The notes under the pieces are model-generated. The model saw nothing but the letters and a program-made list of their open reading frames with translations, ran no database searches and was not told the origin of the DNA. This document shows positions 7,291 to 58,204 of a stretch of DNA of 64,000 nt, one piece after another. A program made the translations under genes and the position numbers. Each line of letters starts with the position of its first letter. Position 1 is the stretch's first letter. The DNA comes from Selaginella moellendorffii (taxonomy: Eukaryota > Plantae > Lycopodiophyta): NCBI RefSeq assembly GCF_000143415.4, contig NW_003314274.1, forward strand, positions 2,028,623 to 2,092,622. Direction: 5' to 3'.

Positions 7291-7328
7291 TACGGAAACG
7301 GTCACATTTTCTAGGGCTTGAGAGGGCG

Positions 7329-8301: not shown

Positions 8302-8458
8302 AGACCCATGCGTACAGGTTCGTCACCATTCTTTTTTCTTGAGCTCTTCACCAGTGATTCACTTCTTTCAGATTTGTGATCGTTAGTAGGGGAAGTTTTT
8401 GCGACAAAGATTTTGGGAAGAAACGAATCCCATCCAAACAAAAGTGGCCGCTCTCTTT

Positions 8459-29989: not shown

Positions 29990-30860
29990 CTGTTGTACCC
30001 TTCGAGTATGGTATGGACTAGCAGGTTTTCAACCTGGAAAACAATAAATTATTTACAAGAGCCACCACTAGCTTGTCCTGTTACTGGGTAGTCTTTAAGT
30101 TCCTCCATGAAGTTGTAATGCATCGTTTGCTATGTTAGAGCAAGCATCCCTAGCAAACATGTTTAGAGCACAACCACCTTTTCGCCATTGCAGCTTTTCA
30201 GCAGTGGCATTTGATACCATCAACCGTGTGATACACAAAAACCTATAATATTCTGAAAATAGGACACAAGTTTCGAGAATTCAATGCTAAAGAACGATGT
30301 GGCTTTAAAAAAGAAGCAGTGTTCAACCATAGGATGCATTAAGATATTCAGTTACTTGTTTGGGAGTAGACGTGAACAGTATCGAGGCTGTGCTCCCCCC
30401 AACACTAATATAAGATGAAACAAGTTATGATAGCAAAACAAAACAGTCATCAAACCCGACCTCCATCAAGACCGATGCCAAATCCTTGTCCCCGATGCCC
30501 AAGCATATTGGCAGGAGGTACATGCACCTCTTCCATGACAGCCAATTAAAACGAGTATCCAACAAGCTTTAAAAGAAGTGGTAAGTTGATCGAGACATCC
30601 CCTTTCAGCGATCTTGTTCGAGCTCTCACCAGGTATAAGTCCTTAGCACTTCCTCTGCTGATGAAAGCCTGAAAGATGAGAAACAATTCTGGGTCTTGGA
30701 GTCGTACTAGACCTTTGATCAATTGAGAATGTAGTCAGACCGTGCTGCTGTGTGAGTTCGAGAAAAGTGTCAACACTTGAAAGTTGAGAGAAGTAATTTT
30801 TGCCTGTAAGGATGCAGCAACTCCCCAAGTTTTGGAAGCCAGTAATCGTTCCCAAACCTA
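29990..30860 (-). pseudogene. Acyl-CoA dehydrogenase (ACAD8/isobutyryl-CoA dehydrogenase-like) pseudogene
   Basis: Minus-strand exon remnants FGND.WLPKL, AFISRGSAKDLYLVRART, EEVHVPPANMLGHRGQGFGI.GLDGGR, AAMAK, QLHG..LKDYP and VENLL.VHTILEG, with frameshifts and deletions. Confidence 0.8.
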
Positions 30861-31479
30861 CACACCACAGAGTTAGAAAAAAGCAAGGAACGAAACATTG
30901 GAAAGACTACGAAGATATCCTGCAGAGCAGCACATCGGTTGAAAACTTGCTTCACTCACCAACGATGGAAGAATAGAATCGCCTCAACACCAAAGATGTG
31001 GCTATTGCCTAACACCACAAAGCGCAATAAACAACAACGCCAGCTAGTTCATCCCCCCAAAATATTTTCAAATTTTGCAATCTAGTGATTAAATTTTTAA
31101 AGCCTTAGTTGCATTAAAACTTAAAAACCTAGAGGTACTTGATTAAGACTTGAAGAACAACTGCATGAAAATTCTTTGAGAACGTTTTCTTTTCCGAGAG
31201 AAAGAAAGAAAATCACTTACTGAAATCTCAGTTGACGTCGATCCACCAATGGATCGATTTAATCGCACCCGCAATCGCTCACCCTTGCACGTAATGAACC
31301 CCCAGAGGCTCGAGAGAGCACTCCATTTCCTCCACATATCCTTCACATATCCCCCTGTCCCAGGTCGATGGAATCCAACGGAAAAGACGTTGGAGAGGCA
31401 TAGCCGCGTTTAATGAAGCATCCCTGCGGAAAACACAAACAAAAAAGCGGTTAAGCGAGCTCAAAGATCTGGTACCTTA

Positions 31480-34400
31480 GAAGGCAGGAGCACTGAGAAA
31501 AAAGTCACTTGAATGGAATCCTTGATATTTGTTTCTACCTTTCCGTCTAATTCCTGGGCAGCTACATGAGTTGCTACTGCAAGCTTCTACTTCTATGCCT
31601 CTTCCTCATCATTTTTGATCAGGTTGATGTGAGCTAGAGCTCTTCCACAATTACTGGATGTTGAACGTGCTACTTCAATAGCTCTTTGCTAGAGAATCTT
31701 ATGGTAATTTCCAGATGAGGATGATGCCAAGGTAGAGTGATCCACAAAAGGCTGCCTCTGGATAAGCTGTTGTCAAGGAGAATGCAGCTTCAGGTGGAGA
31801 TGCCAATAACATGTTGTATCATGAGTGTTCAAGCACACTAGCGTGGACAATGAAGAGGACATGTCTCAGCTAAGAGTCTTATAGCTCAAATCTCCTCAAC
31901 CAGTTTGAGCTGTTGCTCCTATTGCTGTTAGAGAAGCACTTTGTATTCCTTAAATTCAGCTAATGCTGATTCTATGGCTGAACTCATTTGCTTGGCTGCT
32001 AGCTAGATGCGACTAAACATTTGCAGCAAGTCAAGTTTTTCATGCTAGTTTTGACTTGGCATTTTCAAAAAGGCATTATCATTGGATTTTATACTATTCT
32101 TTAGCAATGTGGAAAGTTTTCTTAGTTTCACCAAGAAGTTGATTATCACATAGCACTTTTGGCAAGCAAGTCTTCTAACTTTGACACAGATGTCAAGACA
32201 AAGGATTTGAGTGGAATGACTCATTTCAACTTAGCTAGAGGTGATCTTTTCCCTAGCAACCAGAAAGAGTTCATCAAGTTCCTATCCCACTAGCACAAGA
32301 ACCCACACCCCCTCCACTTTTAGCACCAGCTGTCCACATTTTATAGTGAGGAATGGAGCTGCTTTGAGTCGAGCTTGGGGATATTAGTGGATGATTATAT
32401 TGTGATGTTTTCATCCTATTGCTCTAGGAATTACATAAATGACAATGCCATAAAGTGTGAAGCCTTCTCATAGTCTATGCATGGCTGAGCATAACGTTAT
32501 GTTAGAGCTAGGAGAGAAATAAAACTTTAAGGCACTATTTACATCCTTCTAAAGCACATTCTCTTATAAGATCCCATTGCAATAGCTTATGCAAGATCTT
32601 TTTTAGTTTTAATAAAGTGTGAATAAATCAATCTTCGATTATACCATTTGATTGATGGCCTTTTGGAAGCTCTACCTAGATCACAAGGCTACACAGAAGA
32701 AGGTTACTAATGTCTCATCCAAGGCCTCAAGCCTAAGTTGCAACAAAAGGTGGCAAAGAGATGACACCAAAAATGCCAAGATGCCACCAAGCTTAGGGCT
32801 TCTTTCACTAAAGAGCTCATCCAAGGCCCTCTAGCAGAGCATGATTATGGAATGATAGGAAGAACTATTGTTGGGATTTTGATGAAGAATTCTTACTGTA
32901 GACATTGAATTGGCCCTTAAATTGGCTCTCAACTCTCATAGAAGGAAAATTGATTAAAAATATCTCTCCAACTATGTGGAAATACCACTCAACTTGGTTT
33001 GACACACAAGACAAAGACAAAAAAACTTCTATAAATGAAATTTAGGCTAGTTTTGAACTCAAAAGAAAGTTAAGACAAAATTATCCATATCTACACAAAG
33101 AAAAGTTGAAAAAGCCTTGCACTTTGCCCTTAAAACTATAAAAAGAAAACATTCACTCACAACAAAGGGTGATATGAAATGTTTCTTTCTCACTCAAATC
33201 AAAACCAATTCAAACTTGACATACTTTAGCAGAAACTTAAGATAATATCTAATATCAAGATTTTTGGACTCCAAGAACGCAATAAAAAGGCATACAAAAT
33301 GCGACAAGGAAAAATAAGAATCCTCTCAAATAAATCTATGATCAAAGGTCACTCCAACCATGACAAAACCTACAAAAATAAGGAAAATGAGGCTAAATTC
33401 TCACCAGATTTGCTAAAAGAAGATGGAGTTTTTTCTTGTTGCTACTTATCTCTTTTCTGATTCCTTCAATTTCCATGAACCTAGTGTGCACTAGGCTTAA
33501 ACCTGATTACCCAAGAAGTCGGAATGCAAGAAAGATTGCTACATTATACACATTAACATTTGCTCTTTCCTCACAACAAAATAGAGTAGTGAGCGTGAGT
33601 AATCTATATATCACACCTTTGTGCACATCTTTGGCACACCATTGAAAAGCCTTGGTCTAGATCTATATGTCCATGCTCTCAAATTCAAAGAAAAATCCCT
33701 AATATAGTCGTGATTCAACACCAAAGTGAAAACTAAGCACATAAATGAACTAAACTTGGCATGAAGGGGGCTTGAGAAGAAGCTATAATGGATCCATCCA
33801 CAACTCCCAAGACATGTCATTCTCCTAATAAACCATTAAGGACTGTAGAAAACCAATCTAAAGCAAGAATCAATGAGAACAAGATAAAAACTAAACCATG
33901 AACCAAGATTCTAGGGTTAGGAATCCAGTTAATCCCTAGTGGAGTTGCAACTTTTTAATGCTCTAGCCTCAACCTTCTCTCACACTCACTCTCGTGTGTG
34001 CATAAATGACAATCCCCCTTTCTCTCGCGCTCAAGCATGCACTTTATTGAAGAAGAAGGAATATTCAAAGGATCAGAATATTCCTGGTATCTATCTCTTG
34101 CCTAATGGATTTGTTGGGACAGAGGAAGTTAGGATCAAGCACACTGCACTCGTAGACAGAACAAAAAGCCCTAACATATATATGGCAAGGTGTGTCTTGT
34201 AACACTCACCCCTAAACCAAAGCCATAGACCAAACCAAATTTATTATATAGAAGGTAAAACTAATGTGGTCCCAATAGCTTGGTGAGAAGGTCAACTAGC
34301 ATGTCCTTTGTCCCAAGGTGTTAGACTGCCAAGATGTAGTGAAATTAGACTTCAATTGTAGCATATTTTATTGCTCTCCCCTTAAGCCAATTGGAAAAAA

Positions 34401-37130
34401 GGGGCAATTGCTTAATGAGAGAGCCTTTAATGGTTATTTTATCCCCATTTATCCCCCAAAGGCGTGACTATATAAATAATTCTAACTACCTGTTTACAAT
34501 AGTCTATCTAAGCCTTACTGATGGATTTAATTTCTTTGCTCATGAGGTTTGGGGCCTTTAGCTTCTCTTTCTATATCACTTACAGGTAGGGGCATATCAC
34601 TCTTTTGTAAGTTGGGTGATACCTAGAGTAGTAAGGGTGGCTAACTCCATTAGTCATTTCCTTGTCAGTGACGGTTAGAAGGTGTTTAAGTTATAACACA
34701 TTTGCGTTAACCAAAGAAGTTGCCTTATAACTCATTTAAATTGATGCATTTCCCACAACGTATGAATACCATAAACTTTTTTCTAAAGTTGTTTCCTTAG
34801 TGGTGATCTAAACTAAAGTATGTATTTATAAGGACATCAATCTTCACTAAGAGGGGGAGAGTGTTACAAATAGGACTATGGGTATCTATGTAATGCACTT
34901 TATTTCTCTCTCTTAGATTTTATCCCTATTTATCCCCTAAAATTCTAAGGATCTATGGTGATAAATATCCTATGATCACATATGTTACACTCACTCCCGT
35001 TTTAAAGATGTCAATATTCTTATTAATTATTGACTAAAAACCTTTATTGAGCCAAGAGGAACCATCACCTCCATTTCTACATTAAATCTACCAATCCTTC
35101 CATTGTATAGATTGGCTATTCCATGTGAGGCAACTAATTATTCACATATACCACAGTCCCATGATCGATACTTTTGTCTGTGGATACTCTACAAAAGCAG
35201 GGATATATGTATGGATGCTCAATACATACAATTTCAAATTTAGGAGTAAGAATATACTTAATATCTATAAACAAAGGACGTATATGTGGATGCCCAATTT
35301 GTATAATTTTAAATTTAGAGGTAGGAATATACCTTGCTCCACAAGAGAAAGGATGTACATATATATACACAATATATATGATTTCAAATTTAGGGGTAGG
35401 AATATACCTTACTCAAGGGTATGTTATATTTTAAGTAGCCACTAATTAATAGAAATCAAACCCATTCCATTTTCTTTAATACCACATATAGCACATCTTA
35501 TCTCTCTCCTTAAGCCAATTAAAAAAGGGGCAATTGCTTAATAAAGGAGCCTTTAGTGGCTATTTTATCCTCATTTATCCCCCAAGATTCTAAGGATTTA
35601 TAATGACAATATATTTAAATTTTATCCCATGATTACATGCATTATATTAATGTGCTTTAAGCAAGCATGCTAAATAGGACTCTTGGATATGACAATGCTA
35701 CTCAAGTTATCACACCAAAGAATAGGATCATCTTGTGCATTAGCAGTAGCCTCTGAGCCTAGATCACTTCCCTACTACCAATAGTGAGTGTGATGTACTC
35801 AACTTCTTGGTGAAAGCACCACGATAGATTGTCACTTGGAGGCTCATGCAATGACACCTCCTAAGAAGCAAAGGCAAATGTTAGAAGTCGAGCAATGGCC
35901 TTTATTGTTGGCAAAACTAAGATTCATGTAGCATGTCAATAATGCATTGCCTCTTGAATAAGAAATGCCATAATCTATAATGCCCAAAGGTATTTGATAA
36001 TATGCTTGGATTGACAATGCATAGTGGTTGGTGATATGCTGTACTCCATAGTTATATATATAATGTCATGGTGAGTCATCAGTGCCAAATACATAAAGAA
36101 ACTAATAAGATGGCAATAGAGAGTCCTGGCAGGTAGAGGCACACCTAATTGCTCAACTATGAGATCGATGCCATTGACAACCATCAACATCTTAATGGGG
36201 TGGCAATTGCATATGCCAAACCAATCAAGCAAGACTTTGACCTTATGTTGTTAGCTGCGTATGTAGCCACAGGACATGGGATTGTGTGTGATCTCATAGC
36301 CAAGAAAATAGTAGACTTGGCCAAGGTCCTTTAGAATTACTAGCAATGGTATTGGGTCATCACCAATTATTAGCAATCATTATCATAGAGAGTTATGATG
36401 AGCATGCTCCTAGTTGTGATTAGCATGGGAATAATGAAAGCCTTGAGCATATAAGGTAGCATCAAATTTTTTATATCAAATATAAGAGCTTTGTTTCAAA
36501 CCATACAAAACTTTTCACAATTGCCATACAACTCCACTATTGAATTTACTTGAACATAAGTGTTGTTAACTTGAATGGAAATAACTTCTTCCACAATAGC
36601 TTCCATCCAAAATGAAGCCTCAAATTGAAACAATTTGATTATAGGTCATGGGAATGTTGGTATACTTAAGGCTTTAAAAGACGTTAAACTCCACAGTATT
36701 TGTTTAACATTTTCTTGGACTTTCAATTAAGGTTGATATTCTCAGAAGAATTGGCATCGAATCAAAGTCGATAAGGTGGTGAGCTTATCCTTGATTAGAC
36801 AAGAATTAATAGTTCAAGCATGTTTAAAGGTGAAGATTCCCTAGAGGAAGCTTTGGTGGCAATGCATAAATACTAGGGGCAGAGGTAAGAGTGGACCATT
36901 TCCCATGAGTGGGATTAAAGGATAAAGTTGAGCCTCATCAATTAAAAATGGATTTTGAAGAAGTTATTTTCATTGAATATGACATTCATACTTACAAGGA
37001 CCTTGTGAGATACAAGATCCCACAATTTGTAAGTTTTTCTTCTAATGGCATTATCTTATGTATAAGTTATAAAGATTAATTTCATACTTTTGGGATTTAG
37101 CTTTTTCCTAAGTTGATCAAGGGTATGCAC
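31480..37130. mobile_element. Heavily decayed, AT-rich transposon remnants (gag-like, copia RT/PPT-like and LTR-like pieces)
   Basis: No intact ORFs. FLSGDL-like copia RT remnant near 34795; PPT-like GAGGGGGAGAG followed by TGTTACA at ~34851-34868; ~85-bp direct repeat 34374-34458 / 35502-35584. Confidence 0.5.
35199..35410. repeat. Minisatellite, 3 copies at ~75-bp period
   Basis: Core ...AATTTCAAATTTAGG(A/G)GTA(A/G)GAATATAC(C)TT in units starting ~35199, 35276 and 35350. Confidence 0.8.
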
Positions 37131-37135
37131 ATGTG

Positions 37136-37881
37136 TGTAAGCAATCAAAAGAAACAACTCAAGAGACGATTTATAGGGTTTAAATATAAAGGGAAAGAGC
37201 CCATAAATAAAAGTGCACCTCTTTTCCAATCAGTTAACGGTTTTGGAATATTTAGGGTTAAGTGTCTTTCAGTTTGAATAGTACTGGGCTGAGTGACCTT
37301 TTGGGAAATCTAAATTCAAGATACATTTGGTATTAGAGAGGGTCTTGGTTCTGGGACTAAATTCAAGATACATTTGGTATTAAAGAAGGGCCTCAGTTAA
37401 CATGTTAATTGACATTTGGCAGGTCCAATTTGCTCCGGGCTTGATATAAGGGTTAGGGTGTCAAGAAAGTGGGGAGTGGGGCTTTTTGGAGAGCTATGGC
37501 TCTCAACTTCCATTCACAAGGGTGTAAATTTATAAGGAAATAATCTATGAAGTTCAAATATAGAAGGAAAGGGCCCATGAATAAAAGTGCACCCCCTTTC
37601 CAATTGGTTAAGGGTGACTTAAGGGGTAGGGTGTCAAGAGAGTGGAGAGTGGGGTTTTCTGGAGAGTTGTGGCTCTCAGCTTCCATTCACGAGAGCATAA
37701 ACTCATAAGGAAGTATGGTGGATTATGAGAAAGGGTATATAAAGGGAAAGGGCCCATGAATAAAAGTGCACCCCCTTTTCAATTGGTTAAGGGTTTTAGG
37801 ATATTTAGGATTAAGCGTCTTTGGGTTTGAATAATACTGAGCTGAGTGACTTCTTGGGAAATCCAAATTCAAAAGTTTATA
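37136..37881 (+). mobile_element. Cassandra-like TRIM (5S-bearing LTRs) with partially tandem interior
   Basis: LTR 37136-37325 (TGTAAG...GATACA); PBS-like TTTGGTATTAGAG; duplicated interior; PPT-like GGAAGTATGGTGGA at 37709-37722; 3' LTR ending 37881; perfect TSD ATGTG at 37131-37135 and 37882-37886; 5S-like segment 37257-37311. Confidence 0.85.
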
Positions 37882-39617
37882 ATGTGCTACACAATTAAAA
37901 ACCCAATAGTATTGGGTTGAGTGACTTCCTGGGAAGTCTAAATTCAGGAGTTTACAATGTGCAACACAATTAAAAACCCAAAAGTGGGATATATAAGGAA
38001 TAAAGTTTGTCCAAAATGCTTAAAAGGTTTTACCATCTACTATAATTATAGCTTCTTGTTACAATGTCTTATTGAGATATACATCATTTAACAAAAGGCA
38101 AGCAACATTGACAAGAGTGTGATTTTTTCTTTTCACAATACTATTTTACTAAGAAGTGTAATAGACTATAACTTGAAATTATATGCATATATCACAACAA
38201 TGACCCAAATCTCATTGTTGAGGTGTTCACCACCACTATCAACCCAAAGAACTTTTATCTTGTGGTCAAAAAGATTTTAACAATTATGTTGCTTTTGCCC
38301 ATCAAGAAGTGGATGCATATCTAACAGATATAATTATTAATGAATGTGCTTAAAATGTTTTGCACTATCATGGCTTGGCATGTTCATGGGGCCGCAAAAA
38401 TCAGAATGGACCAAGTCTAGAAATCTAGTTATTTGATATTTGTTTGGTGAGAAATTTTAGTGGTGATACTTGCTAGAACACAAGCTTCATAAATGTAGAT
38501 AGAATACATTGGAAATTCAATCTAGTAACAATGCTTTGGGATATCATTTGCTAGAAAAATTAATAATGTAAATGACCAAGTCTCTTATGCCAAAGTTCAA
38601 TATGAAAATCTGCCTCTATAATTTGGAAAGCTTGAATTGAGTTAATAACAGTAATCTTATAAAAATCCCCTATGCATTTCCCACAAAGCAACTATATATC
38701 AAATATGGATAAGTTGCTAGAGTCAAACTCTTTTTGCATTAAAAACTATCATTACACTTTGATTGCAATTTTTGGTAGCAAACATTAAATTTCATTACAA
38801 GGTGGAAATGTGCATGGCATCATAAAATGCCATAATCCTCCCATGATCAAGTGAGAGTTGAAATTGCTTAATGCCTTTCACAAAGATAGTGGTATCATTA
38901 TTTAAATGAACGCCATATTTTCCAATACTTATCTAGTGATACTCAAAAAGATTTTTCTTTATTACCCATAAGATTAGTAAAATTAAAGCTTAGGAGCCAC
39001 CTACTAGATGCCATAATTTCCTCTAGAGCTCCTTGTCAACCTCATTCCTCAACTTTATCGCTCTTGAGTAGATTAGTTTTTGCCATAGTAGCTAATTACT
39101 TGATAAGTTTCGAAGTTGCAATCTCAAGCTTAATAGCCCATCTCTATGCAGCAAATGTATTGATTTTTATCTTTGGTTAAATTTTTGCCCTTTCTAGGCA
39201 TTTACTACTGCATATGGTTTTGCCACTTTAGCATCACTAGAAACCTACAAAAAATATGTAATCTATGGCATTTTAGCTCTCTTGTTCTACACAACCTCAA
39301 TATTGCCAAGACCTCATGGCATTTGCCCAAGTCATCCTTAAGTGGAAAAGTAGACTCTCAATTGTGTTCTTTTAGCTAGCCAGTAGGGACTTGTAGAGCC
39401 ACAACCTCTACTACTCATCTATGAAACAATATTTTGCCCTAACAACCATAAGTTGTGTAAAGAAGATCTAGAGTTTGGTAGTGTGAGTTTAGATACTACC
39501 ATTTTCTTTTAGCTTGAGAAGTCCATTTGAAATAAATAAGGGAGTGAACCTTAGGCCGATGATAAATTGTACTAAACTTCAACTTGATTAAGGCATTATA
39601 GCTTTAAATCCCATAGG

Positions 39618-40214
39618 TGTAAGTTTCTAAGTTTGGACTTCCCGAGAAGTCATCCAACCCAATACTATTCAAACATAAGGATGCAACCTTAAATATCCTA
39701 AGACCCTTAATCGATTAAAAAAGAGGGTGCATTCTTGTTCATTGGCCCTTTCCCTCTATATTTGAACCCTATGGATTGTCTTTCAAATTGTTTTCTTTGG
39801 TTACTTACAATCCACCATACTTTCCTGCAAGTTCATGCCCTCATGAATGGAAGTTAAAAGCCGCAACTTTCCTGAGAGCCCTGCTCTTTTGACACCCTAC
39901 CCCTCGGGTCAAGCCCAGCCAAAGCAAATTGGATCTGCCAGATGTCAATTAATATATGATGTGATTCTCTTAGCTAACCAATAGAGTTTGACCTAAGACC
40001 TTTCTGATACCAAATGTAAACTCTTGAGTTTAGACTTCCCAAGAGGTCACCCAACCCAATACTATTCAAACCCAAGGATAGTTCTATTTAAACCCAAGGA
40101 TGCTTAACCCAAATATCCCAAAACTTTTAACCGATTAGAAAAAAGGTGCACTCTTGTTCATGGACCCTTTCTCTTTATATGGATCGTCTCTCAAGTCGTT
40201 CTTAGTTATTTACA
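39618..40214 (-). mobile_element. Complete Cassandra-like TRIM nested in the gypsy 3' LTR
   Basis: LTRs 40015-40214 and 39618-39809 (TGTAA...TTACA); PBS TTTGGTATCAGAAAG; ~205-bp non-coding interior; PPT-like GGAAAGTATGGTGGA; imperfect TSD ATAGG/ATATG. Confidence 0.87.
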
Positions 40215-42387
40215 ATATGTTTTAAAATATTCTTAGAATATTCTTGTGGTTTGTGTCATTCTCCCCTCCTTCATAACCCAGCCACGTATGGCAACCTCGA
40301 GAAGTTAAACAAGCTTCACATGAAGGGAGTCCAAGGCAATACAACCATGGAGAAGAGATATGCAAACAACAATACCAACATTGTGACAAATAAGCACGAA
40401 AGAAAGAAAGCAATACAGCTTTCTTACATGACAATACAATCATAGAAATAAGAGAATGAAAATAAAACAAATGGCTTAAATTATATAACAATACAGCTAT
40501 AAAACTCAATTCTCCTCTTCCTCAAGAATGTTATCCAAGTTATAATCAAAACTTGGAAACACTTTTTTCATGTCATCCTTAGTTTCCCATGTAGCTTCGT
40601 CTATGGAATAACCATTCTACTAAACTAACAACTCTATAGTTGTCTTCTAGTGTGTTTTCACCAATCTTTGAGTAAGAATATTAGCCAAACCAGCATCAAT
40701 GTCTAGGACCTAAATGATGGATTGATCCATAATATCACTAAAGTGCAAACATGCTTTAATTTTGCTCACATGGAATATTGGATGAATCTTCAAACTAGCT
40801 GACAATTTCAAAGTGTATGCAAGATCCCCCACATACTATAAAATTGTCAAAGCCCATAATACCATAGAGACAACTTAGCACTGCCACTTCCTTTTAAAGA
40901 CCGTTGTGCATCCAATAGCTTAAAGAAAACTTTGTCACCAACTTTGTACTCTTGATAACAATGATGTTTATTAACTAGTCTTTTGTCTTGATCTTGAACT
41001 TGCCTCTGCCGAGTCAAGCTTGTCTTGCATATCCTCCAAAAAATCATAAACATAAAGTATTTGAACCAAAGCTAAACTTAAACTTATGAGAGATCTAGGC
41101 TTATAACCACATATCATTATAAATGGAGATATGTCAATAGTTGATTGATGAGCGCTATTGTAAGTAAATTGAAGCAAAGACAAGTACTTCTCCTATACTC
41201 TCTGTTGAGTTAAATTTCCCATAAATGACCTTAACATATCTTCCAACAGCTAATTCATACATTTTGTCTGCCCATTTGATTGTAGATGCTCACCACTACT
41301 CATGCTCAACTTAGTTTCTAGCTTCTTAAAGACCGTTTGCCAAAACTTGGATATGAACTTGGGATCCTAATCACTCATATTGTCACCTAACAAACCATAA
41401 AGATTAAATAATTAGTTTATAAATAATTAAGCAAGTTCAAAAGCTTTAATAGTCGTTTTCACTAGGAAGAAGTGAGCCATCTTCATTAAACAATCCACAA
41501 CAACCCAAATAGCATCATTTCCTTGAAAAGTCTTGGGCAAACTAATAATAAAGTCTATTAAGATACTATCTTAATTATTTTTGGTACACATAGAGGATGA
41601 TAGAGGCTAGCAAACTTCTGATGATCAACTTTGACCGCTTGGCTGGTCAAACAATCACATGCATACTTCTCAAAATCTAACTTCATCCTAGGCCAAAAGA
41701 AATGCCTTTTCATTAACATATACATTCTCAATACCCTTGGATTTAACTAAAATCCTTTTGATGAGTTTGTCAACACAAGGAACTAGCACATGTCCCTTTT
41801 TCACTAGGATTCCATTTCATATCTCAAATGACACAAACTTGTCACTTTTCAAATTTGTAAAGGTGTCTCTTAACAAAACCTTCACAAGAATATCAGTGAT
41901 AAATGAGATAAAATTTAACATCTTGGATAATGCATAAACCATTTCATTGTCACCTCCATGCTTGTATCGGATCTTAACAGACATTTCATATAGGAACTCT
42001 TCCTAATGAGCAAGGCAGCTTCAAAGATCCTTTTGTTAGCTAAAATACTAGAGAGATTGATGATCTAAATCCACATAAAAGTTTGATCCATATAGATAAT
42101 GTTGCCATTCTTTCATAGTAGTAATCACAATATACAACTCTTTATCTTGAGTAGGCTAATTCCGTTGTATGGCATCAAATTTGTGAATCATGTATACAAG
42201 AGAATGCCTAACTTGAAGCAATATGGCCCCAAAAACACTATCACTCACATCATTGCTTATAGATTCTATTACAGTCACTTTATCATTCATTTACCCCTTC
42301 AAAACAATCCTTGCTCTAATGTCCATCCCTATGGTAACAAAAACAATTGCCCTCTTTTTTATCCTTTTCTTGTTAACCCAAATCTAG

Positions 42388-42582
42388 TGTAAGCTCTTGA
42401 GTTTGGACTTCCAAGGAGGTCACTTAGCCCAATACTATTCAAACCCAAGGACACTTAACCCTAAGTATCCTAAGACTCTTAACTGATTAGAAAAAGGGGG
42501 TGCACTCTTATTCATGGGCCCTTTCCCTCTATATTTAAACCCTATGGACTATCTCTCAAGTCGTTCTCTTTAATTGCTTACA
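42388..42582 (-). mobile_element. Solo LTR of the Cassandra-like TRIM
   Basis: 195 bp, TGTAAG...CTTACA. The minus strand of 42405-42459 matches the plant 5S rRNA box A-IE-box C segment at 43/55 positions without gaps. Confidence 0.85.
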
Positions 42583-43559
42583 TGCAGTTTCTTAACCTCA
42601 TTGCCATCTTCATGCTTCGAACCCCAATGTATCAACAGTTGTTTCTTCCTTGAATATGAAGTATTGGTTCATCATATCTATCCTGTTGACAAGAGTTGAC
42701 TAAATTGACTGATGGTTTGGGTGAAAAGATGTTAGTGATAGCATCAGTCAATGTTGCTAAAAAATCCTTTTTAACCTTTTATTACATAGCCATTAAGCTT
42801 AAACCTTTGATAAAACATTGCACCTTTATAGATGCCCGTAAAACTAAGGCAAAGATCACAGAATTTGCAAGTATATGCATCCAAAGACAAAGTCCCCTAC
42901 TAAATCTCTAACACCTAGTTCACAAGATTAACCTCTTTAAACTTCTTGACAAACAAAGTATGGAAAAATTTCATTAAATCACTCTAAAAAGTCAGTTTTG
43001 GATTAGCTTTGATGTAATTCTTCCACCATAAAGAAGTATAATCTGTAAGCATTATCACAAAAAAATCAATCTTCACTTTATCCTCACAAGGATTGTGAGA
43101 CTAACAACTTTCCCACAATTCTAACTAAGAATCAACCTTTTGACTATTATAAACATTTGGCAATGACTTCCATTCCATAATACCATAATCTTTAGCATGT
43201 TTGACATATTAATGATAATCATAGACGTAAGGTTGATTCAACCCTTTGAGGATCCATATGAAGCAAGAAATCCTTAATGAGATTGATGGAATCCTTAACC
43301 TCCTTAATGTTGTTTTGAACCTCAGAAATTTAGCATTCTTGCCGCACAACAACATCATCAAGAGTCTCTTCCTCATCATCATGGCCATCATCAACAACAC
43401 CATACTCCTCATCAAGATTAATATCTTGCTCATTTGCCATCCCTAAAAGAACATGTTGCTCCGATACCAATGAAATGAACAAGTTTTAAGGCATTACAAC
43501 CTTAAATCCCATGGCCATAAAATATTCTTAGAATATTCCCATGGTTTGTGTCACCATTG

Positions 43560-43800
43560 TGAATGGATGGATGTTGAAGACATTAATCTCAGTCTTGGCA
43601 CCATAGGTGTCCCTCAACCACTTCCAAAGTGCTGCCACAATAGACTTGGGAATCGATAGAGTAGCAAAGAGAACATTTAAGGGCAAACATATCACAATGC
43701 TCCTTATAGCTTTGGAATCCTAGAGGTTCCAGTCATGCACTTCAACAGCACTAGAGCTGGGAGATGGGAAATGTCCCATCTACAATCCCTAACAAACCAT
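43560..43800 (-). mobile_element. Ty1/copia gag remnant
   Basis: HDWNL*DSKAIRSIV ... SIVAALWKWLRDTYGAKTEINVF, resembling copia gag (UBN2-type) motifs. Confidence 0.5.
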
Positions 43801-44276
43801 GAAACAAAAGGTAAGATTCAAGAATCCCTTCTCCATCAAATTCACAGATGGATAGCTTTCCTTCCATAACTCCTATACTATGAAAAAAATCAGGATCAAG
43901 CATATTGCACTAGCAAACAGACCTGATGTATATGGGGCGAGGTGTGTCTCATAACAGGAGGCAGAGGTGAAAGGAATGCTGCTCCTGAGTGTCGTGGTGG
44001 AAGACAGTGCTAGCCTCAGCCTGAAAGTGGCAGAAGGTGAAGATTGGAAAGATGGCATTTCAAGCGTTGGGAGCACTAGAGGTGGAGGTAGAGAAGGATG
44101 AAGCTGGATATACTGGAGCTGAGATGTGGGAAGAACATGCAGAAGCAATAAGAAGAGCTTGTTCTTGGCAAGTTAGTATTTCCTTCCAGTTCTTCCAGAA
44201 CACTGAAAGCAGCAGCACATGAGAAGCTACAAGCTGAGTGCTGTGATTCTGGGAGGGCTCAAAGGCATGTTGTATC

Positions 44277-44517
44277 TGTTAGAACTAAGCTGAACATGCA
44301 CACAGCCAGGGCAGGTAGCTTACTGGTAGAGTACTTGGCACCAGTGTAGGAGGTCCTGGGTTCAATCCCCGGCCTGTCCAGATCCATTTTCCAACATGGT
44401 ATTGGAGCTATGGCCTGTGGTAGGCAGCAGGTAGGGATGTGTGGCGTGTTCAGCTTAGGGGGGACTGTTAGAACTAAGCTGAACATGCACACAACCAGGG
44501 CAATCCAGTTTAGAACG
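44277..44517 (+). mobile_element. Miniature non-autonomous LTR element with a tRNA-derived LTR
   Basis: LTR1 44277-44396 (TGTT...AACA); PBS TGGTATTGGAGC 44397-44408; PPT AGGGGGGA 44457-44464; LTR2 from 44466, repeating the first 37 nt of LTR1 with one mismatch. Confidence 0.82.
44309..44380 (+). tRNA. tRNA(Ala)-like cloverleaf inside the LTR (probably not a translational tRNA)
   Basis: 7-bp acceptor stem GGGCAGG/CCTGTCC with G3:U70; D arm with A box TAGCTTACTGG; T arm CTGGG-TTCAATC-CCCGG (B box); discriminator A; downstream TTTT. The anticodon arm is weak and lacks U33. Confidence 0.7.
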
Positions 44518-44813
44518 AATTCAAGGCTATACCAACAATGGGGAAATGCTGAGAACTTTGGGCATCTTATCGATGGTTCTTCTATGATGCCGGTCGTTTG
44601 TGCTCAAGGGGTGTTGGCGGTGGCAGAAGATGCTGGTGGAGAGGATTTCGATCAGATTTGTTAGTTTATAAACCACTGAATTTGGAATATTCCTAGACCG
44701 GGTTCGTCATGCCTCTTGATCGTAACTTGGAGAAACGGCATCTTGCCGGGCGTGCCACACCATGCTCGTTTGGAGGTTGGACCATTTTCTTTGTTAGCTC
44801 CAACATTAGCCCG

Positions 44814-47800
44814 TTACAGAAAGAAGAACGATTTACTACAAGTATGTTTTGCTATAGACTTTGATCGAGTCACGTCCATTGCTCCACGCGTCTCTTCGAC
44901 TCTCTTGCTACTCCACAGGCCCTTCCACTCTCTTGCTAGTAGGACACGTGGACCCTGTAGAAAACCTCCCGCTGTTACAAATGTCACAGGACGGTGTTGG
45001 CTTCCATAAACTACACTGTTTACCAGAATTATGACGACACGGAGGCACGTCAGATGTGTCTGGAGCGTCATCACTTCAAGGCCCTGGTGGTTGTAGGAGG
45101 ATTCAGCTAGAAGATTGGCATTAGAACTCGAATTCTTATCTACAGATAGGTACCTTGAGTTGATGTAGGGGACCTGGAAGATCGTGACAACAGTTGTCGA
45201 TTCCCGCTACTCCTATTTTGTCTTGGGTTGAGATGATGGATGTTAGCCTTAGTGGCGCTCGAAGAGAAAAAGACTGTCGAGCCAAAAACAAAAATGACAG
45301 TTAATAAGAAACAACATAAAGACAATACTCACTGTTACGAAGAAAGCCCCGCGGAATTGCAGTCTACTCTAAGTTCTGTTCTATAGCTCGTTCAAATTCT
45401 ACACAGGAAGTTAGAAGATTAGAAAAGGAAGAACATTACAAAACCACGACACTTACCAGCCACTGTCGAGGTGACCCTGAGCTCCCAAGTTGCAAATCTC
45501 TCTCGCAGCTGTTCAATTGCTTGGGTGGTGACAAGAGTTCGTGGTTTTATCCACGTGATGGTAACAGTGGCATCCACGCCATCCATGATTCCTTCAAGAA
45601 TGTGTTCAGAGAACATGTGCATGAGCAAGAATTCCACGTCACGGTTCACTTCTTTCTGTAACAAAGGCAATTGATATGTTCCACAGCTAGGAACAAACAC
45701 AAAGTTTTAGATTTTATCAAACATAGACTTGAACATCATACCTCGTGATTAGACACCTCAGTTTCATTACTTCAAACTTGAATCGTGGAAAACTTTCAAA
45801 GTAAACGGCTGGAAAGATCTTTTCCGTGTAAAGCTTGACATTGGCAGTGTTGAACGTGGTGAGTTGACAACGTCGTTTTTCTCCCTGAATAATTCATGAT
45901 AAATGGTACTGTTCAAAATCAACTTAAAACCTTACCAGATCCGCTTGGCAGGTTAGGAGGTCACCAAAGTCACAGCCAGTGAAAATAGCAGCGAATACCA
46001 TTTCATCCAAGATACGCTATCACACACAGAGTAACAATATGTTATTTTGAGAAGTCGTAGATAGATACCTCTCTGGTGTCTTCATAAGCTGCTCGCAAAC
46101 ATGCCAGGATTGATAACCCGTGGTGGTAGAGTCCTTTCATGTCCTCGGTATACCTGAAGTATTCGTAGAGCTGCCACTGTAGAGCGTCTCTGAATGACGG
46201 ATGCAACGATGTTTTGTCCAACGTGTTTTCAATGTCTTCCAGATGCATGCGACACTCGCTGAATTCATAAGACACTCGCTTTTGCGCAGCCACGAATAGT
46301 TTTCCCAACATAGCGGCTTCTATAGGAAGACCAAGCTTTTGCAGTGCTTCCGTGTAGTCTAGATGCCACTCTCGAATGAGTGGATTCACCACCAGCGTCT
46401 GCCATTTCTGAACACACATTAAAAAAAAAGTGAAATGAGACAAGAGAAAGTGAAATGAAAAGACACATACCTTTTGTGGGATGATCTTAATCCACGGTTG
46501 AAGAAGACCATGCCTCTCCTTCCAATCTCGAAGAAGTACAATAAACATTCCACCACCCTTCAGAGCAGAAAGTCTTTTGCAATAGCTTGTCGGGTCCTTG
46601 GGAAGACCATAGGAAATAACAGCATTTACACCATCTGGAATGGTGTCTAATTTGCACCCGTCCGTCAATATGATGAACCTGGCTGTTGGCTGTTGGTAGC
46701 TGAGCCAAATCTGAGCTGGCTGCCCTGTTTTTGCTTCCACAATATCTCCCACGGTTTTGAGCTGCGACGAAGTATCAGACCAATAAATCAGGCACCTTGT
46801 GAGACCCGGAAACAGAACACCAATGTTCTCTACAACACGTCCGAAGTTTCGAAGCTTTCCGACCATCACGTACTGAATGACATTCTTGGGAAACATATAC
46901 TGTAACGTACGAGGTTTAGATGACGCGCTACAATAACTTTTTTAAATAGTAAGCCATTTACCTTGTCACCATTCTCTTCGAGAGTATCACCGAGAGAATT
47001 GCACTGCGGCTGGCCTGAAAGCTCACACCCTTGCATCGCCTGTGCCAACTAACGGGGTTACAACGACATATCTTGCTTGATGGAAGTACACTTACCTGTA
47101 CTTCGTCGTCCGTGTTTGCTTCATCATGGACTTGACAAACTCCAGTAACGATTTGGTTATCATGCGTCCTTGTGCTCTTGTCGCAGGACTGAAAGCTGGA
47201 GCTTGCGAGCAGCGTCGGATGTCCTTGTAGCTACCAGAAGCCAAACAAGTATGTATACAAAGCTATGTCACAGAACACTCCTATGTACCTCTTGGTGTGG
47301 CGCCTCATTGTTGGAAGCTTTGCAAGAATTGCACTGCGGCTGGCTTGAAAGTCCAGACCCTTGCATCACCTGTGCCAACGAACAGGGTCACCACGACATA
47401 TCTAACTTGATGGAACTACCTGTACTTCTTCGACCGTGCGTGCCTGATCATGGCAAACTCCAGGAATGATTTGGTTATCATGCGTCCTTGTGCTCTTGTC
47501 GCAGAACTGAAAGCTGGAGCTTGCGAGCAGCGTCGGATGTCCTTGTAGCTACCAGAAGCCAAACAAGTAGTATACAAAGCTATGTCACAGAACACTCCCA
47601 TGTACCTCTTGGTGTGGCGCCTCATTGTCGGAAAATGTGCAAGAATTGCACTGCGGCTGGCTTGAAAGTCCAGACCCTTGCATCACCTGTGCCAACGAAC
47701 AGGGTCACCACGACATATCTAACTTGATGGAACTACCTGTACTTCTTCGTCCGTGCGTGCTTGATCGTGGGAAACACCAGTAACGCTTTGTTTGCCATGC

Positions 47801-48316
47801 GTCCTTGTGCTCTTGTCGCAGGACTGAAATCTGTAGCTTGCGAGCAGCGCCGGATGTTCTTGTAGCTACCAGAAGCCAAACAAGTAGTATACAAAGCTAT
47901 GTCACATAAAACTCCCATGTACCTCTTGGTGTGGCGCCTCATTGTCGGAAAATGTGCAAGAATTGCACTGCGGCTGGCTTGAAAGTCCAGACCCTTGCAT
48001 CACCTGTGCCAACGAACAGGGTCACCACGACATATCTAACTTGATGGAACTACCTGTACTTCTTCGTCCGTGCGTGCTTGATCGTGGAGAACACCAGTAA
48101 CGCTTTGTTTGTCATGCGTCCTTGTGCTCTTGTCGCAGGACTGAAAGAGCGGCGTCGGATGTCCTTGACACTACCAGAAGCAAAAGAATATACATACAAA
48201 GCTATCTCACAGAAAACTTTCACGTACCTCTTGGCTTGGCGCCTCGTTGTCGATCTTCTGATCCTAGAAACAGTGGCAATGGCCCGTAATATCGTGTCTC
48301 GATCATCGCACAGCAC
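44814..48316 (-). pseudogene. Lineage-specific multi-exon gene or pseudogene with a degenerate DEAD-box helicase-like domain
   Basis: FIILTDGCKLDTIPDGVNAVISYGLPKDPTSYCKRLSAL..GGMFIVLL resembles helicase motifs V-VI without the catalytic residues. GT-AG introns are present and there are stops in the repeated part. Limits are uncertain. Confidence 0.45.
46995..48250. repeat. Tandem repeat, 4 units of ~317-330 bp
   Basis: Marker AGAATTGCACTGCGGCTGGC at 46995, 47325, 47642 and 47959. Confidence 0.92.
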
Positions 48317-51530: not shown

Positions 51531-52449
51531 ATATCATTGTTGTCATCATCTACTGCAATGTCTTCTTTTGCCTTTGTATAGTGATATTATCTCCTCTTTG
51601 TCCTCCTACAAAACATACCAATTGATTGGTTAATTTTGGTGCTTATAGGAGCCATATCTTCTATGTCTGATAGGGATTAAACTTTTATTGCTTTAACGTA
51701 GAAGTAGTTCTTATTAACTTTGGACTAACATCGATTGTTGAAGTAAATATACAACAACTTCTAAACATGATTTGTTCATAACTGATTATAAGATATATTA
51801 TGGATGAATTTCTGTGTGCTAAAGCTCTTTTTCGGTATCACACAAAAACAAAAAAGAAGAGAATAAAAAGAGGAAGAAAAAAGTAAACACAACTAAATCA
51901 GCTAAACCTAAGCACCCCACCTAACAACTTAGATACTATAGTCTAAGGTGCTACCTTGAAAACATCTTGGTCATTGGTGCCTTCAAGATTGTAAAAGATC
52001 TTGACTGGCCTTTGTCATTTAAAACATTGTGATTTGATTTTATCGTAGACAAAAGACATATTTGTTGAAATTTGAATCTATGCATTATAGGGAGGTGAAA
52101 GTTCTATACATATTTGAAGTCATTAGTGACATATGATATTTTATGCCTTGCTCATTCAAGTCAATTGAAGAAATAACTACAGCAATGCTACAAAATGCTA
52201 TAGCTTCTAGTGCGAAGTTATGCAGAAACTATATCCAGCACATGAGGCCTCAATGATGGGAACCATGAACCAAGGAAGAGGTGATAATGTAAATTAACAT
52301 ATCTATAAGACCTCTATAGAACTTTGGGTTCTAGATTTAACATTGAAGTGTTGCACATAAAGCCACTTACTATGTAAAAATAAATTGCAAAAAATTTATA
52401 GCATGTTGGGAGAGATTAATAGTGGGGGAGAGAGGTAGTTTCAAAGTGA

Positions 52450-53330
52450 ACACCACCAATGTCTATGAAGTTAATGTTGAGGAAAGATGAGGATCCAATC
52501 TTAAATGGTTTGTTGTGAAACTTGTAATAAGTTCTATAGTGAGATAATGGATATAGTAGAAGTTGTTGACTACTAAATAAAAACTACAAGTCCACAATAC
52601 AATTCAGCAAAGCAATGGCCACTAGATACAAAGAGGCTATTGGTAATCAAACACCATAAACTATTTTGTGAAATATCACAAATTTAATGCTTAGTTGTGA
52701 AAAAACTAATGAGAAATGAGAATATAAAGTAAAATCAAGATTGATTGCCTATCAATAGCTGTAGAAGTAGATGTATTTGGAGTGGTAGATGTTAGCTAAA
52801 TTGAATAAATGGAAAGTTTCCATGCAATTCTTGTGCAACAGAATGCCATCCTATTATATGGTAAGTATGCAAAACATTTTAACATACCTATGAAAACATA
52901 TGATAGGTTTTTATAGTTAAAAGAAGCATTAAAAGGCAAATAAAATGATAGAACATACCACTAATGTTATGGGAACCACTAACATTTACATCCACTGCAA
53001 TTTTATGTTTTTTATAAAATAAATTATATGATAGATAAAAACTATTAGATACCAGCAATGTTGTCTGTCATTGGCTGGTGATACAAGGAAGACACTCTCA
53101 AGCCAAGGTTATTTTTGTTGACATTGTTCTCAACCATTGCTTTTGGAAGTAAATTTGATCCTATTGGATATATGGTAAGGCAAGGCAAATGTCTATAAAA
53201 ACCTTGCAACATTTGTGTTGACAGTACATCAAAAGATATTAAGCAAGTGTTTAAACATCTTATAATGTAGTTGAAGATATAGTAATTTGATGGGGAGCAC
53301 AATAGCATTCCTAATATTTAATATGTCCTT
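52450..53330 (+). mobile_element. Possible decayed hAT (DUF659-type) transposase
   Basis: Weak remnants only (VEVVD, FVDIVLNHCFW..DPI..VY); no ORF and no TIRs identified. Confidence 0.3.
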
Positions 53331-53639
53331 TGTTTGCTTCTATTATAACAACCTAATGGTAGAGATGCAAACTCCAATAGCACACTTGACAATAGTGGTA
53401 TACACTATTATTTTGTTTATTTTGATAACTTTTGACTGTTTATGACTAACATTGACAAAAGTCACTCGATGCATTTTAAAATTCTTTTATCAACCCTTCC
53501 TATAAACAAGCAAGCCATAGTTGCCTTCTTTGATTTTTCATATGTATCTATGAGTCTATTCTCTAAACTTTCCAAAGATATAAAAAATAAAGAAATAGAG
53601 ATAAAAATATTTGAGCTCTTAGATGATTGATTCCTCTAA

Positions 53640-55070
53640 GATTCTTAAGAAATTTTCTTAAATTTTCAAGTACACATGAACAAGAGAGAACCCACTTAAA
53701 TATATTATCATAAACAAAGAAGGAATTTTAAATTCTTAATAAAAATTATGTACAAAACCCACTTAAAATCTCTATTGAAATTTTAAATTAGAAACAGAAA
53801 AAATGATTTAAATTTACAATAAAAATTATATAAACTTTCTAGATTACTATCTTATGACTTTTAAAATCATACAATATGAAAAATTGGAACCACTTTAAAA
53901 ACATTTAACTATGAGACCCTACATTTAAATAGTTGTAATTAAAAATAAATATAGCTGATATATATACAATACTTATGTTACCCAACTTCATTCTTATTTT
54001 TATTTCTGGCTTTCTACTTATTTTTTAATGTAAATTTAAAATTGATTACACTTTAAAAACAATTATTCAACCTTTCTAGATTTGAATATAAAAATAAAAT
54101 TTCTTGGAACCATTTTAAATATATATAAAAACAAAACTTTCATTAAAATAACTACAATTTAAATTAAATATAAGTAGTATATATATAGTACTCATGTTGG
54201 CCAAACTTCCTAATGCATTCATATTCATTTTATATTCTCTTTTGTGTTTGAATTCTTTCTTAAATCGTTAAGGTCCAAAATGCAAACACTTATTATATAA
54301 TGATGAAACGAATATAAATTAAAATATCTTTATAAAGTTTATATTATGTTTAAGAGATCCTAATTCACCATTAAAGTGCATTAATACTAAAGAAGCATTA
54401 TTCACTTAATCCTTAATATTCTCCTAAATATTCTATTTTATCAAATACTAAAAATTTACTCTAAATTTTAAAATTCCTTTATTAGCTTTCCAATAAATCT
54501 ATAAGCCACACATTACCATTTTTTATTTCTCATGTGTATTCATCAATATGTCCTTTAAAGTTTCCACTGATATAAAAAAGAGAAGAAAATTTAACTTTTA
54601 TTTTTCAAAGATTTTCAAGTAAATTCCCCTAAATTTTCAAATGCATGTGAGCAACAAGGAACCCACTCAAAATCCTATATCATAAAAATATAAATAATTT
54701 AAAATTATTAATATAAAGTAAATAAAAACCCACTTAAAATATTTATTAAAATTTAAAATTGGAAATTAAAAAATGATTTAAATTCACAATAAAATCTGTA
54801 TAACCTTTCTAGATTACTTTATTGCTTTTAAAACCATGCAACATTAAAATAAAATTTTTTGAAACTATTTTAAAAATTAAATAGTTATTTTTAGATAATT
54901 GAGTATATATATAGTGCAAAATGTTCACAATAAAAATTAAATAAAAAACCAAAAATAGAAAGAGGATTAATAAAACCTATATAACTACTTGTGGTTTATG
55001 TAGCCAAACTTTGGAGTGCATTTGATTTCATTTTTCATTTTCTCTTTTTTTTTCAAATTATTTTCTAAAT
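53640..55070. repeat. Very AT-rich region with diverged direct repeats
   Basis: 53640-53870 resembles 54610-54840 (AACCCACT(T/C)AAA...CTTTCTAGATTAC), and 54195-54260 resembles 55000-55070. Confidence 0.65.
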
Positions 55071-55329
55071 CATTGAAGTATTTTTGTTATTTCATTTTTT
55101 TTTTTAAATTCTTTACTAAACTCCAAAACAGACCCTTCTTTTACAACTATAAAATGGACATTTGGACAAGCAATAATATTAATTTCATGGGCAAAATTAC
55201 GTGTAACTACAAAACAAATGTTTCTGAAGAGATCTTAATCTACCATTAAAGTCTCACAAAGCAAATGTTTCTTGGTTGACATGCATGTGGTGGTGATCAA
55301 ACTGGCTGCACAACATGCGTCTTTGGCAG

Positions 55330-55610
55330 TGGAGAAGTTAAACCGAGACTCTCGAAATGGTTTGGACTCACAGGTTTTCAACCTGGAAAACAATAAATTA
55401 TTTACAACAGCCACAACTAGCTTGTCCTGTTACCGGGTAGTCTTTTAAGTAGCCATGTCCTCCATGAAGTTGCAATGCATCAAGCAAGCATCAGTGCGAA
55501 CCTGAGAAAGGAACAAGCAAAAATGTTTAGAGCCAAGCAATGGGCACAACAACCTTTTCGCCATTGCAGCACAAGCCGAGGCTTTCAGCAGCGGCATTTA
55601 ACAAAGGTGA
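55330..55610 (-). pseudogene. Second acyl-CoA dehydrogenase 3' fragment
   Basis: CAAMAK|RFA.DAC..DALQLHGGHGYLKDYP|VENL; homologous to 30017-30215 including an intron. Confidence 0.8.
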
Positions 55611-55777
55611 GCGTCAAAAGCACGAGAAAAGTACTTACGTATTTCTTTCTCCCAGCTCGCTGCGAAGATCATTTTAATGCTGCTGTTTGTTGGTTGGAAA
55701 GAAAAGTTAAAACACCGCCGATGGTTTCCATCCCAACTGTGCTTGAACAACCCGGGAGTCCAGATGGATGCACTCTC

Positions 55778-58204
55778 TCACTGACGATCCACTTCAACCA
55801 TGTGGATGTCATTAGGCGAGAGTAGCACGCCTGGAGTTTGTTGAGCAAAGGCGTCCGGGCTGTCCGGGAACAAACTCGTAGATATACCACCTCCGAGCGA
55901 TGAGTTCCCGTTTAACAGCAGGCTTTGCCCGTGCGCGAACGTCCCATCTACAGCTCCCAATGAATCGGCCTAACAGGAGAGTACACGAGCAAATTTTAAT
56001 GCAAAAACAAGTCTTCCACTGCAATGAAGAATCGCTCACCCAATACAGGTCCAAAGCCGATGAGCGGAGCACGTCCGCGTTTGACGATGAGCGGAACAAA
56101 TCAAAGCTGGATGTGCCTTGCGACGTCCCGAGTAGCGAACAAGCGGCAGATTCCTGGATAAAACGCTGGAGTAAATCAAACACAGAGAGACGCTGGAAGC
56201 ATGCATACCCGAGCTGGTGGCACAACTCGAATGTGCTCCTTCGTTTTAAAAGAAAACGCATCGCATGTTTCTTCGCCTCCCCACACCGAAGGCGTCAAAG
56301 AATATCGATCGGCGTCCTGCTTGGAGGCGTCATTCAATACAATGAAGCGATCAACCGAAGAAGCTCCCAGTAATTCCTGCAAAAGCCCGCAAGATTTGGA
56401 ATAAAGAAGTACGTCGAACTGATAGCTTACCTCATCTCGCCAAAGCCGCTGGCCGAAGCCATCCGTACTTCTATCATACAACCAGCTACAGCCAGGTACT
56501 TGAGAATCCAGTTGAGAATGATCTTCATGTCTCTCGATGACAGTGACTGGCTCCGCACCAGATTTTGAACTCTTTTCACAAACATTTTGGCACCAGCCAT
56601 ACCTGTCCAGCATAGCATGGTGGCAGTGAAGTTAGCAACTCCAAACTAAAGAACGCAAAAGAAAAAACAGGCATTACCTCAAGCGAAACACTGAAGGTCT
56701 TCCTACGGCATCGTAAACGTCTGCAGCACACACCACATCTTTCGAGTTCCAGCTTGTAGAGGAAGGCTGTCGAATGAAAGGATAGAGACGAATATCTCCA
56801 GTAGCCACAGAGCAGCGACCCCATTTCTGAGACAAGTGCTGTAGCACAGAGCTTATGCTTTTCGAGGCCTTGAGTGTCAACTCAAGGTGTGGATTGTGAC
56901 CCTCCTGTAGCAAACAATATTTGTTAAAAATGGTTGTAAGCTGAATACTCAAGTTTTTAAGATACCTGCTCCAGTGCTGTTTTAGTCTTGTCGTCAATTG
57001 GGAAAAGCTGCAACTTGATTTTCAAAACCGCAGTCTCCATTTGAGGAACAGATGTGCTAGACTTCAAGTTAGGCTCAGAGGGCGTGGGTGTTGATACAGA
57101 GTTCTGCTTCTCCATATTATTTTCTTCCGGCTTTCCACCTTCAATGATCTTGCTATTTAGCTCGGATTCAGGGGGCTCCAAGACGCTATCTGCATACAAA
57201 TTTTTATTTAACACACATAAAAACCTGCAAACAAGAAGCGTACCACTAGCTGCTTTAACTTGAGGCCTCACTGGAGCTCTCGTGAACGATCTTTTCCTGA
57301 CTTCACCAGCAACAACACTGGCAGGTTTGTCCGTGCTTGTTGAGGGAGCTTTAACCTTCTTTTTAGCTTTCTTCCTATCCTTCAGACGATGTTGCTCCTA
57401 AATTAGACATAAAAATGCATCAGGAGAGTCCACAGTAATGAACATACATACCAAAGCAGTCGCAATAGCCTTCAAACGCCGAGGCTTCAAATGAAGCTTA
57501 GAAGACGAGCACTTAAACTTCTCCAAAAGCGACCACCTGAAACAGAACATTTAAATGTCTCAGACAAATGAGATCCACCTCACCAGCACAACATCGCCGA
57601 ATCTACATCTTTGGAGTTCCTCGCATCTATCAAAAGATCTGATCGCAGGAACTTGTTCATGCGCTTAATCAAGCGATAGTAGTAATGCCGGACCTAAAAG
57701 AAGATATAAAGCTAAACAGCATACTTGCATCCAGACAACGCACCTGATCCTTATTTTTGCTCACAACTTGAGATGTGATTTTCTCGAAATCCTGCAAATA
57801 GTACTCAAAGTTCTTTACATTGGAAAGTGTCACTGCGATAGTACCTTGCCAACTTGTCGTAACGCGGAAAAAAACTTTTCCTCTTCTTCATGAGTCCACG
57901 CTGCCCATTGCCGCGTCCTTTTTCCTGAAAGAACAAAGATAAAGAGTCAAAATGTCCGGTCCATGTAAAAAAAACCAAGAACTAGAACTAGAACAACATA
58001 AAAAAACCCGGCCTCCCAAGAAAAGACGGTGCCTTACATGAAATACAGCGGCAATCTTCTCTGTTTCTTGGCAAAAACTGAGATTCAACAAGAGTAGAGC
58101 TAAATTCTGCCGAGCTAGGACTCCATACCTGATTCGACTGGCTCCTGCTGCTCCGGAGTAGTGTCTTGGCTCAGAGCCGGCGAAGAATCCGTGGTCTCCA
58201 GCAT
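55778..58204 (-). CDS. TKI1: TSL-kinase interacting protein 1 (SANT/Myb, Cramped-like), multi-exon
   Basis: QWAAWTHEEEEKFFSALRQVGKDFEKIT..KNKDQVRHYYYRLIKRMNK, KIKLQLFPID, GHNPHLELTL..K.ISSVL.HL..KWG, FRLRYGW and LYW|ADSLG; TGA at 55778-55780. Confidence 0.88.

Follow-up and report, generated by a model that had tools for sequence, protein, structure and literature searches.

Identification of a truncated Helenus-1_SMo copy

A tRNA-like cloverleaf lies within an LTR-type sequence in a 64,000-nucleotide stretch of the Selaginella moellendorffii genome (the window), which raises the question of what kind of element carries it and how this locus reached its present form. An earlier note, made from the sequence alone, had described positions 44277 to 44517 as a gene-less LTR retroelement (TRIM) of ~240 bp with a tRNA-derived unit in its LTR, possibly of the Helenus kind and then of limited novelty. 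The kind of element and its family were borne out by the match to the published Helenus-1_SMo consensus. With a high degree of confidence, the best explanation as a whole is that 44277–44502 is a degraded, 3′-truncated copy of Helenus-1_SMo, a tRNA-bearing TRIM, whose family would use the mechanism and whose locus would have the insertion-then-deletion history presented below.

Helenus-1_SMo has been described from S. moellendorffii with an LTR of 120 bp, an internal region of 85 bp, a total length of 325 bp and 5-bp TSDs (PMC10886601). Its consensus, the LTR of which includes the tRNA part, is printed in Data S1 of Kojima (2024, Biology 13:119; PMC10886601; Repbase). Identities to this consensus were counted by eye and not by machine alignment. 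The 5′ LTR agrees with it in 114 of 120 positions (differences at 44305, 44321, 44323, 44332, 44335 and 44343), the interior in 67 of 69 positions, collinear apart from two gaps of 8 nt, and the remainder of the 3′ LTR in 37 of 37 positions (consensus positions 1–37), resulting in an overall identity of about 95% by eye. The copy shares with the family the 120-nt LTR, the tRNA-like unit at LTR positions 33–104, the primer binding site (PBS; one change) and the purine tract. It differs in the absence of 3′ LTR positions 38–120 and of the 3′ TSD, in two internal deletions of 8 nt, in eight substitutions and in its length of 226 nt compared to 325. The family being already published, the copy is an ordinary, damaged member of it.

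Extent of the element

Direct reading of the sequence identified a unit of 120 nt with TGTT...AACA ends at 44277–44396 (+), where the first LTR had been proposed; contigs of other copies share its ends, and the comparison with the consensus identifies it as a complete 5′ LTR of Helenus-1_SMo. The proposed second LTR was confirmed in its start (TGTTAG...) but not as a whole LTR, since only 37 nt of it are present (44466–44502, +; LTR positions 1–37, identical to the 5′ LTR in 36 of 37 positions). A repeat search detected a direct repeat of 38 nt (44276–44313 and 44465–44502), and pairwise alignment of the two LTR regions showed no similarity beyond it. The bases at 44503–44517, formerly counted to the element, are flanking DNA without LTR similarity and are also found after the empty site of the sequencing run X5 described below. 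The element thus ends at 44502, and the locus holds a 226-nt remnant of a 325-bp element, with the 5′ LTR whole and the 3′ LTR reduced to its first 37 nt; both LTRs are found in other copies, as represented in contigs of public runs.

A complete, shorter TRIM variant of ~240 bp with unequal LTRs would also present the TG start, the PBS, the purine tract and the second TGTTAG... start, all of which were found. In such a variant, however, the repeat would not be expected to end after 37–38 nt and to be followed by flank bases that recur at the empty site, with neither a CA end nor a TSD, and the 3′ LTR of other copies goes on into the tRNA part. This explanation is therefore given almost no credence here.

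A precise loss of the tRNA part from the 3′ LTR was considered as well, on the grounds that atccagttt after 44502 resembles LTR positions 106–114 and that ccaaca is found at 44531–44536. It was dropped: these bases are flank that recurs at the empty site, no similarity was seen in the alignment and a TSD is missing.

No Pfam match was obtained for the two ORFs checked at this place, namely ORF 44410–44664(+), which overlaps the element, and ORF 44716–45009(+) downstream of it. A search of the whole 64,000-nt window revealed no further Helenus pieces.

Primer binding site, internal region and polypurine tract

As the earlier note had stated, the PBS directly follows the 5′ LTR and a polypurine tract precedes the 3′ LTR. 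The PBS TGGTATTGGAGC (44397–44408, +) shows one C>T change compared to TGGTATCGGAGC of the family, and the polypurine tract AGGGGGGA (44457–44464, +), adjoining the 3′ LTR, equals the end of the published internal consensus, which is thus matched on both sides of the interior. The internal region (44397–44465, +) measures 69 nt in the by-eye consensus comparison, instead of the ~50 nt first estimated and of the 85 nt in the family. Eight nucleotides are missing from it after 44413 and another eight after 44426, and the bases at 44403, within the PBS, and at 44465 are substituted (by eye).

The canonical PBS TGGTATCAGAGC did not occur anywhere in the searched window, and the variant with G is probably no more than what this genome uses.

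The tRNA-like unit of the LTR

The 72-nt cloverleaf proposed at 44309–44380 was recovered at exactly these coordinates (+; LTR positions 33–104) with the Rfam tRNA model RF00005. The match reached 42.3 bits compared to a gathering score of 29 (E-value 1.3e-5 over the 64-kb window; model positions 1–71), and no Rfam family other than RF00005 attained its gathering score anywhere in the window. Counting of the stem pairs showed 7 of 7 pairs in the acceptor stem, including G3:U70, 4 of 4 in the D stem, two of them wobbles, and 5 of 5 in the T stem, with a T loop of UUCAAUC. The intact acceptor, D and T arms described before were thereby confirmed, as was the TTTT run (44387–44390, +), a possible Pol III stop located 7 nt after the unit. 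The anticodon arm, previously considered decayed, is not grossly so: 4 of 5 pairs are formed and the loop CACCAGU has 7 nt, although it carries an A at position 33.

Putative Pol III promoter parts were identified by sequence motif as an A box (about 44316–44326, +) and a B box (GGTTCAATCCC, 44359–44369, +). The tRNA-like unit, and with it the LTR, contains the corresponding motifs TAGC..TGG and GGTTC.

The anticodon is CCA (Trp) in this copy and CCG (Arg) in the family consensus. The former description as tRNA(Ala)-like is right in that G3:U70 is present, but the label depends on this pair and conflicts with the anticodon CCA/CCG. ARAGORN called no tRNA at 44309–44380 with default settings and a tRNA-Trp(cca) with relaxed settings. 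In MFE folding the cloverleaf was not recovered, and the stability was no better than that of shuffled sequences (z = −0.26). A functional tRNA would have U33 and an anticodon in accord with its identity elements, neither of which was found. With A33, a CCA/CCG anticodon that clashes with the Ala-type G3:U70 and no ARAGORN call at default settings, the unit does not qualify as a functioning tRNA gene.

Other copies in public sequencing runs

Contigs of the public runs X1, X2, X3 and X5, of which X5 is DNA, were compared with a segment of 1,601 nt at 85% likeness. The earlier note had named a single-copy locus, and relatives with LTRs free of the tRNA segment, as findings that would speak against it. 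The contigs instead showed many other copies, with a summed contig depth of 6000–9900 over the LTR compared to about 257 in the flanks, and these copies hold the tRNA part in both LTRs.

Contigs from other loci leave the window sequence exactly before 44277 and after 44396, and these breaks at 44276/44277 and 44396 therefore confirm the LTR ends. A second group of joints runs backwards in the window, from 44495 to 44308, from 44470 to 44325 and from 44500 to 44362, which means that the 3′ LTR of other copies runs into the tRNA-like part; intact copies therefore hold the tRNA segment in both LTRs.

The contigs also display the consensus state at positions where this copy deviates. C at 44321, 44332 and 44335 was found in ten to eleven X5 contigs and also in contigs of X1–X3, and G at 44465 in seven contigs. 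In one other copy TGGACTG is inserted after 44426, and in another, seen as the loose end of an X3 contig, TTGGATGG continues after 44413. These are the two 8-mers missing from the copy at 44277–44502.

The truncation junction 44502|44503 was found without any difference in contigs of X1 (44473–44624) and X3 (44373–44530). It is not an assembly slip, because both runs carry it unchanged.

At this locus the tRNA part is seen only in the 5′ LTR, as would be expected if, at this locus only, an ordinary TRIM had by chance received a tRNA-derived SINE or a tRNA pseudogene in one of its LTRs; such a route was proposed by Kojima as the distant origin of these families (PMC10886601). Against a chance insertion here, the published consensus LTR holds the tRNA part (PMC10886601), dozens of contigs of other copies carry it, 3′ LTRs included, and at this locus it is missing from the 3′ LTR through truncation. 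No intact members with tRNA-free LTRs were seen in the public-run contigs. The probability of this explanation is considered to be vanishingly small.

Empty site and history of the copy

The five bases preceding the element, GTATC (44272–44276), are presumed to be the 5′ copy of a 5-bp target, for which the X5 empty site reads GTAGC. No twin of GTATC was found after the stump at 44466–44502, and the 5-bp TSD of the family is accordingly missing at this locus. This is a defect of the copy that stems from its lost 3′ end and does not speak against the family assignment.

One X5 contig with a depth of 234, corresponding to single-copy DNA, joins 44262 to 44500 via 17 letters and lacks the element. 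The joining letters are a repeat of the 5′ flank as far as GTA, after which GCGCCA follows. The contig is in effect an empty site, reading ...GGCATGTT GTAGC GCCAGCA ATCCAG..., where the window reads ...GGCATGTT GTATC (element) ATCCAG.... The flanks in X5 differ from the window by about 3–7%, though the run is labelled as the same organism.

Comparison of the two states suggests the following as the simplest and most likely history. The element would have integrated at the 5-bp target GTATC in unique intergenic DNA. A later single deletion of ~95 nt would then have taken LTR positions 38–120 together with the GTATC on the 3′ side and some 7 nt of the adjoining flank (GCCAGCA). Its endpoints would lie in CCAGGGCA of the LTR and in CCAGCA of the flank, with the microhomology GCA common to the joint. 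Both sequence states were observed, with a junction that is ambiguous by a few bases; as the flanks of the empty-site sample differ by about 3–7%, we infer the order of events, insertion followed by deletion, from the sequences.

The same observations were weighed against a truncation at the time of insertion, in which the repair of a chromosome break would have taken up an incomplete Helenus cDNA via CCAG..GCA microhomology, with neither integrase nor TSD; this cDNA would have had its whole 5′ end but would have stopped at position 37 of the 3′ LTR. Such a capture would fit the microhomology at the junction (CCAGGGCA of the LTR compared to CCAGCA of the empty site), the non-existence of a second TSD and the bases beside the 5′ end, which are TC in the filled and GC in the empty site. 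However, the element begins precisely with the terminal TG of the LTR, the state that integrase leaves, and the five preceding bases match the empty site in 4 of 5 positions, in a sample whose flanks are diverged by 3–7%. One later deletion accounts for all of this in fewer steps, and capture is regarded as improbable.

In addition to the later deletion, the preferred history would include the two internal 8-nt deletions and eight substitutions gained by the copy. Six of the eight substitutions are transitions, and four of the eight fall on CG or CHG sites as C>T or G>A, a pattern as expected for the usual decay of methylated repeats. Two of these four convert G:C pairs of the D stem to G:U; the kept D-stem pairing therefore needs no selection.

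Proposed mechanism of the family and comparison with known elements

Helenus-1_SMo is without genes, and the mechanism proposed here draws on its anatomy and on the TRIMp3 model of Kojima (2024; PMC10886601). RNA polymerase III would be attracted by the A and B boxes that the LTR owes to its tRNA ancestry, and would produce the template RNA. Transcription would begin around LTR position 33, pass the first T-run and terminate only at that of the 3′ LTR. On this view the repeated part R corresponds roughly to the tRNA-like segment, giving a U3 of about 32 nt, an R of about 80 nt and a U5 of about 6 nt. Reverse transcriptase and integrase would be provided by an autonomous LTR retrotransposon. 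Priming would occur by the 3′ end of the initiator tRNA-Met on the PBS, the purine tract would serve for the plus strand, and integration would create the 5-bp duplication.

We infer that Pol III drives Helenus from this anatomy; its activity is unvalidated for Helenus, as stated by Kojima (2024; PMC10886601). Over the locus 44277–44502, RNA-like contigs have a depth of 3–4, and contigs are blind to starts, ends and strand. Because these contigs cross the T-run, they look like read-through or DNA carry-over.

The copy described here is dead: it cannot be copied again, because the R region of the 3′ LTR and its terminator are missing. At most, its 5′ LTR could still yield a short tRNA-like Pol III RNA.

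Cassandra follows the same logic, being a TRIM whose LTRs hold a Pol III promoter derived from 5S rRNA (Kalendar et al., 2008, cited in PMC10886601). Both are gene-less LTR elements, the LTRs of which contain a segment of a small-RNA gene bearing an internal Pol III promoter (Kojima's 'TRIMp3' class). In Cassandra this segment is derived from 5S rRNA and not from a tRNA, and the element is larger (565–860 bp). In Cassandra, unlike Helenus, transcription by Pol III has been demonstrated (PMC10886601).

A Cassandra-like element is also present in the window, at 39618–40214 and 42388–42582. A permissive Rfam search returned a 5S_rRNA match at 40018–40126(−) that scored 34 bits (E-value 1.8e-4), slightly short of the gathering score of 38. 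LTR-like repeats begin at 39618, 40015 and 42388, which may reflect three copies of the LTR or else a nested or tandem organization.

Similar to Helenus, tRNA-derived SINEs (SINE2) start with a head of tRNA origin that contains A and B boxes, continue with a short body without coding sequence and rely on an autonomous element. They are copied by non-LTR (LINE) machinery and are without LTRs, PBS and purine tract, whereas the element at 44277–44502 has all three.

Genomic surroundings

The element adjoins DNA that is single-copy in X5 (43870–44276, depth about 257). Beyond this, one side is a repeat-rich, AT-rich tract with an LTR-like end and a PBS at 43458–43469(−), where an exact TGGTATCGGAGC follows an LTR-like ...TTTCA end. 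The neighboring region 43600–43870 is highly repeated in X5 (depth up to 7000), and the contig of another copy continues into GCTCCGATACCA. The frames downstream of this PBS are full of stops. Together, 43458–43469(−) and 43600–43870 probably belong to a decayed LTR retrotransposon, as its 5′ LTR and PBS.

Owing to its exact family PBS beside an LTR-like end, this place was considered as a candidate for an autonomous partner of Helenus. It shows no Helenus likeness past the 12-nt PBS, the one ORF near it has no Pfam match, and no autonomous partner was found within the window.

On the other side lies a spliced minus-strand transcript, 44782–45200(−), which is present in contigs of X1 and X3 without differences. 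These contigs skip 44954–45022 and 45107–45153, both with CT..AC ends, which are introns of a minus-strand gene. The 3′ end of this gene is located about 280 nt from the Helenus copy. ORF 45422–45700(−) gave a weak, sub-threshold Pfam match to WI12 (19 bits), and none of the flanking ORFs checked had a convincing Pfam match.

At 46995–48252, about four copies of a unit of about 317 bp follow one another in tandem, with 82–97% identity. The GC content falls from about 0.50 to 0.34–0.37 across the repeat-rich tract 30000–44000 and falls once more, to 0.29–0.31, at 52000–56000.

Significance of the locus

Beyond annotation the significance of this locus is slight. For annotation, it demonstrates that tRNA-like matches in this genome can be retroelement LTRs and not tRNA genes. 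It also provides a documented case of how a Helenus copy may die, in which a microhomology deletion would have taken the 3′ LTR.

That a different sample has an empty site is a hint that Helenus could be used as an insertion-polymorphism marker in Selaginella. Tentatively, and with considerable doubt, the X5 empty site would mean that Helenus-1_SMo insertions are polymorphic among S. moellendorffii accessions and that the family has moved recently, and the remaining 5′ LTR may still be the source of a short tRNA-like RNA made by Pol III about 280 nt past the 3′ end of the spliced minus-strand gene.
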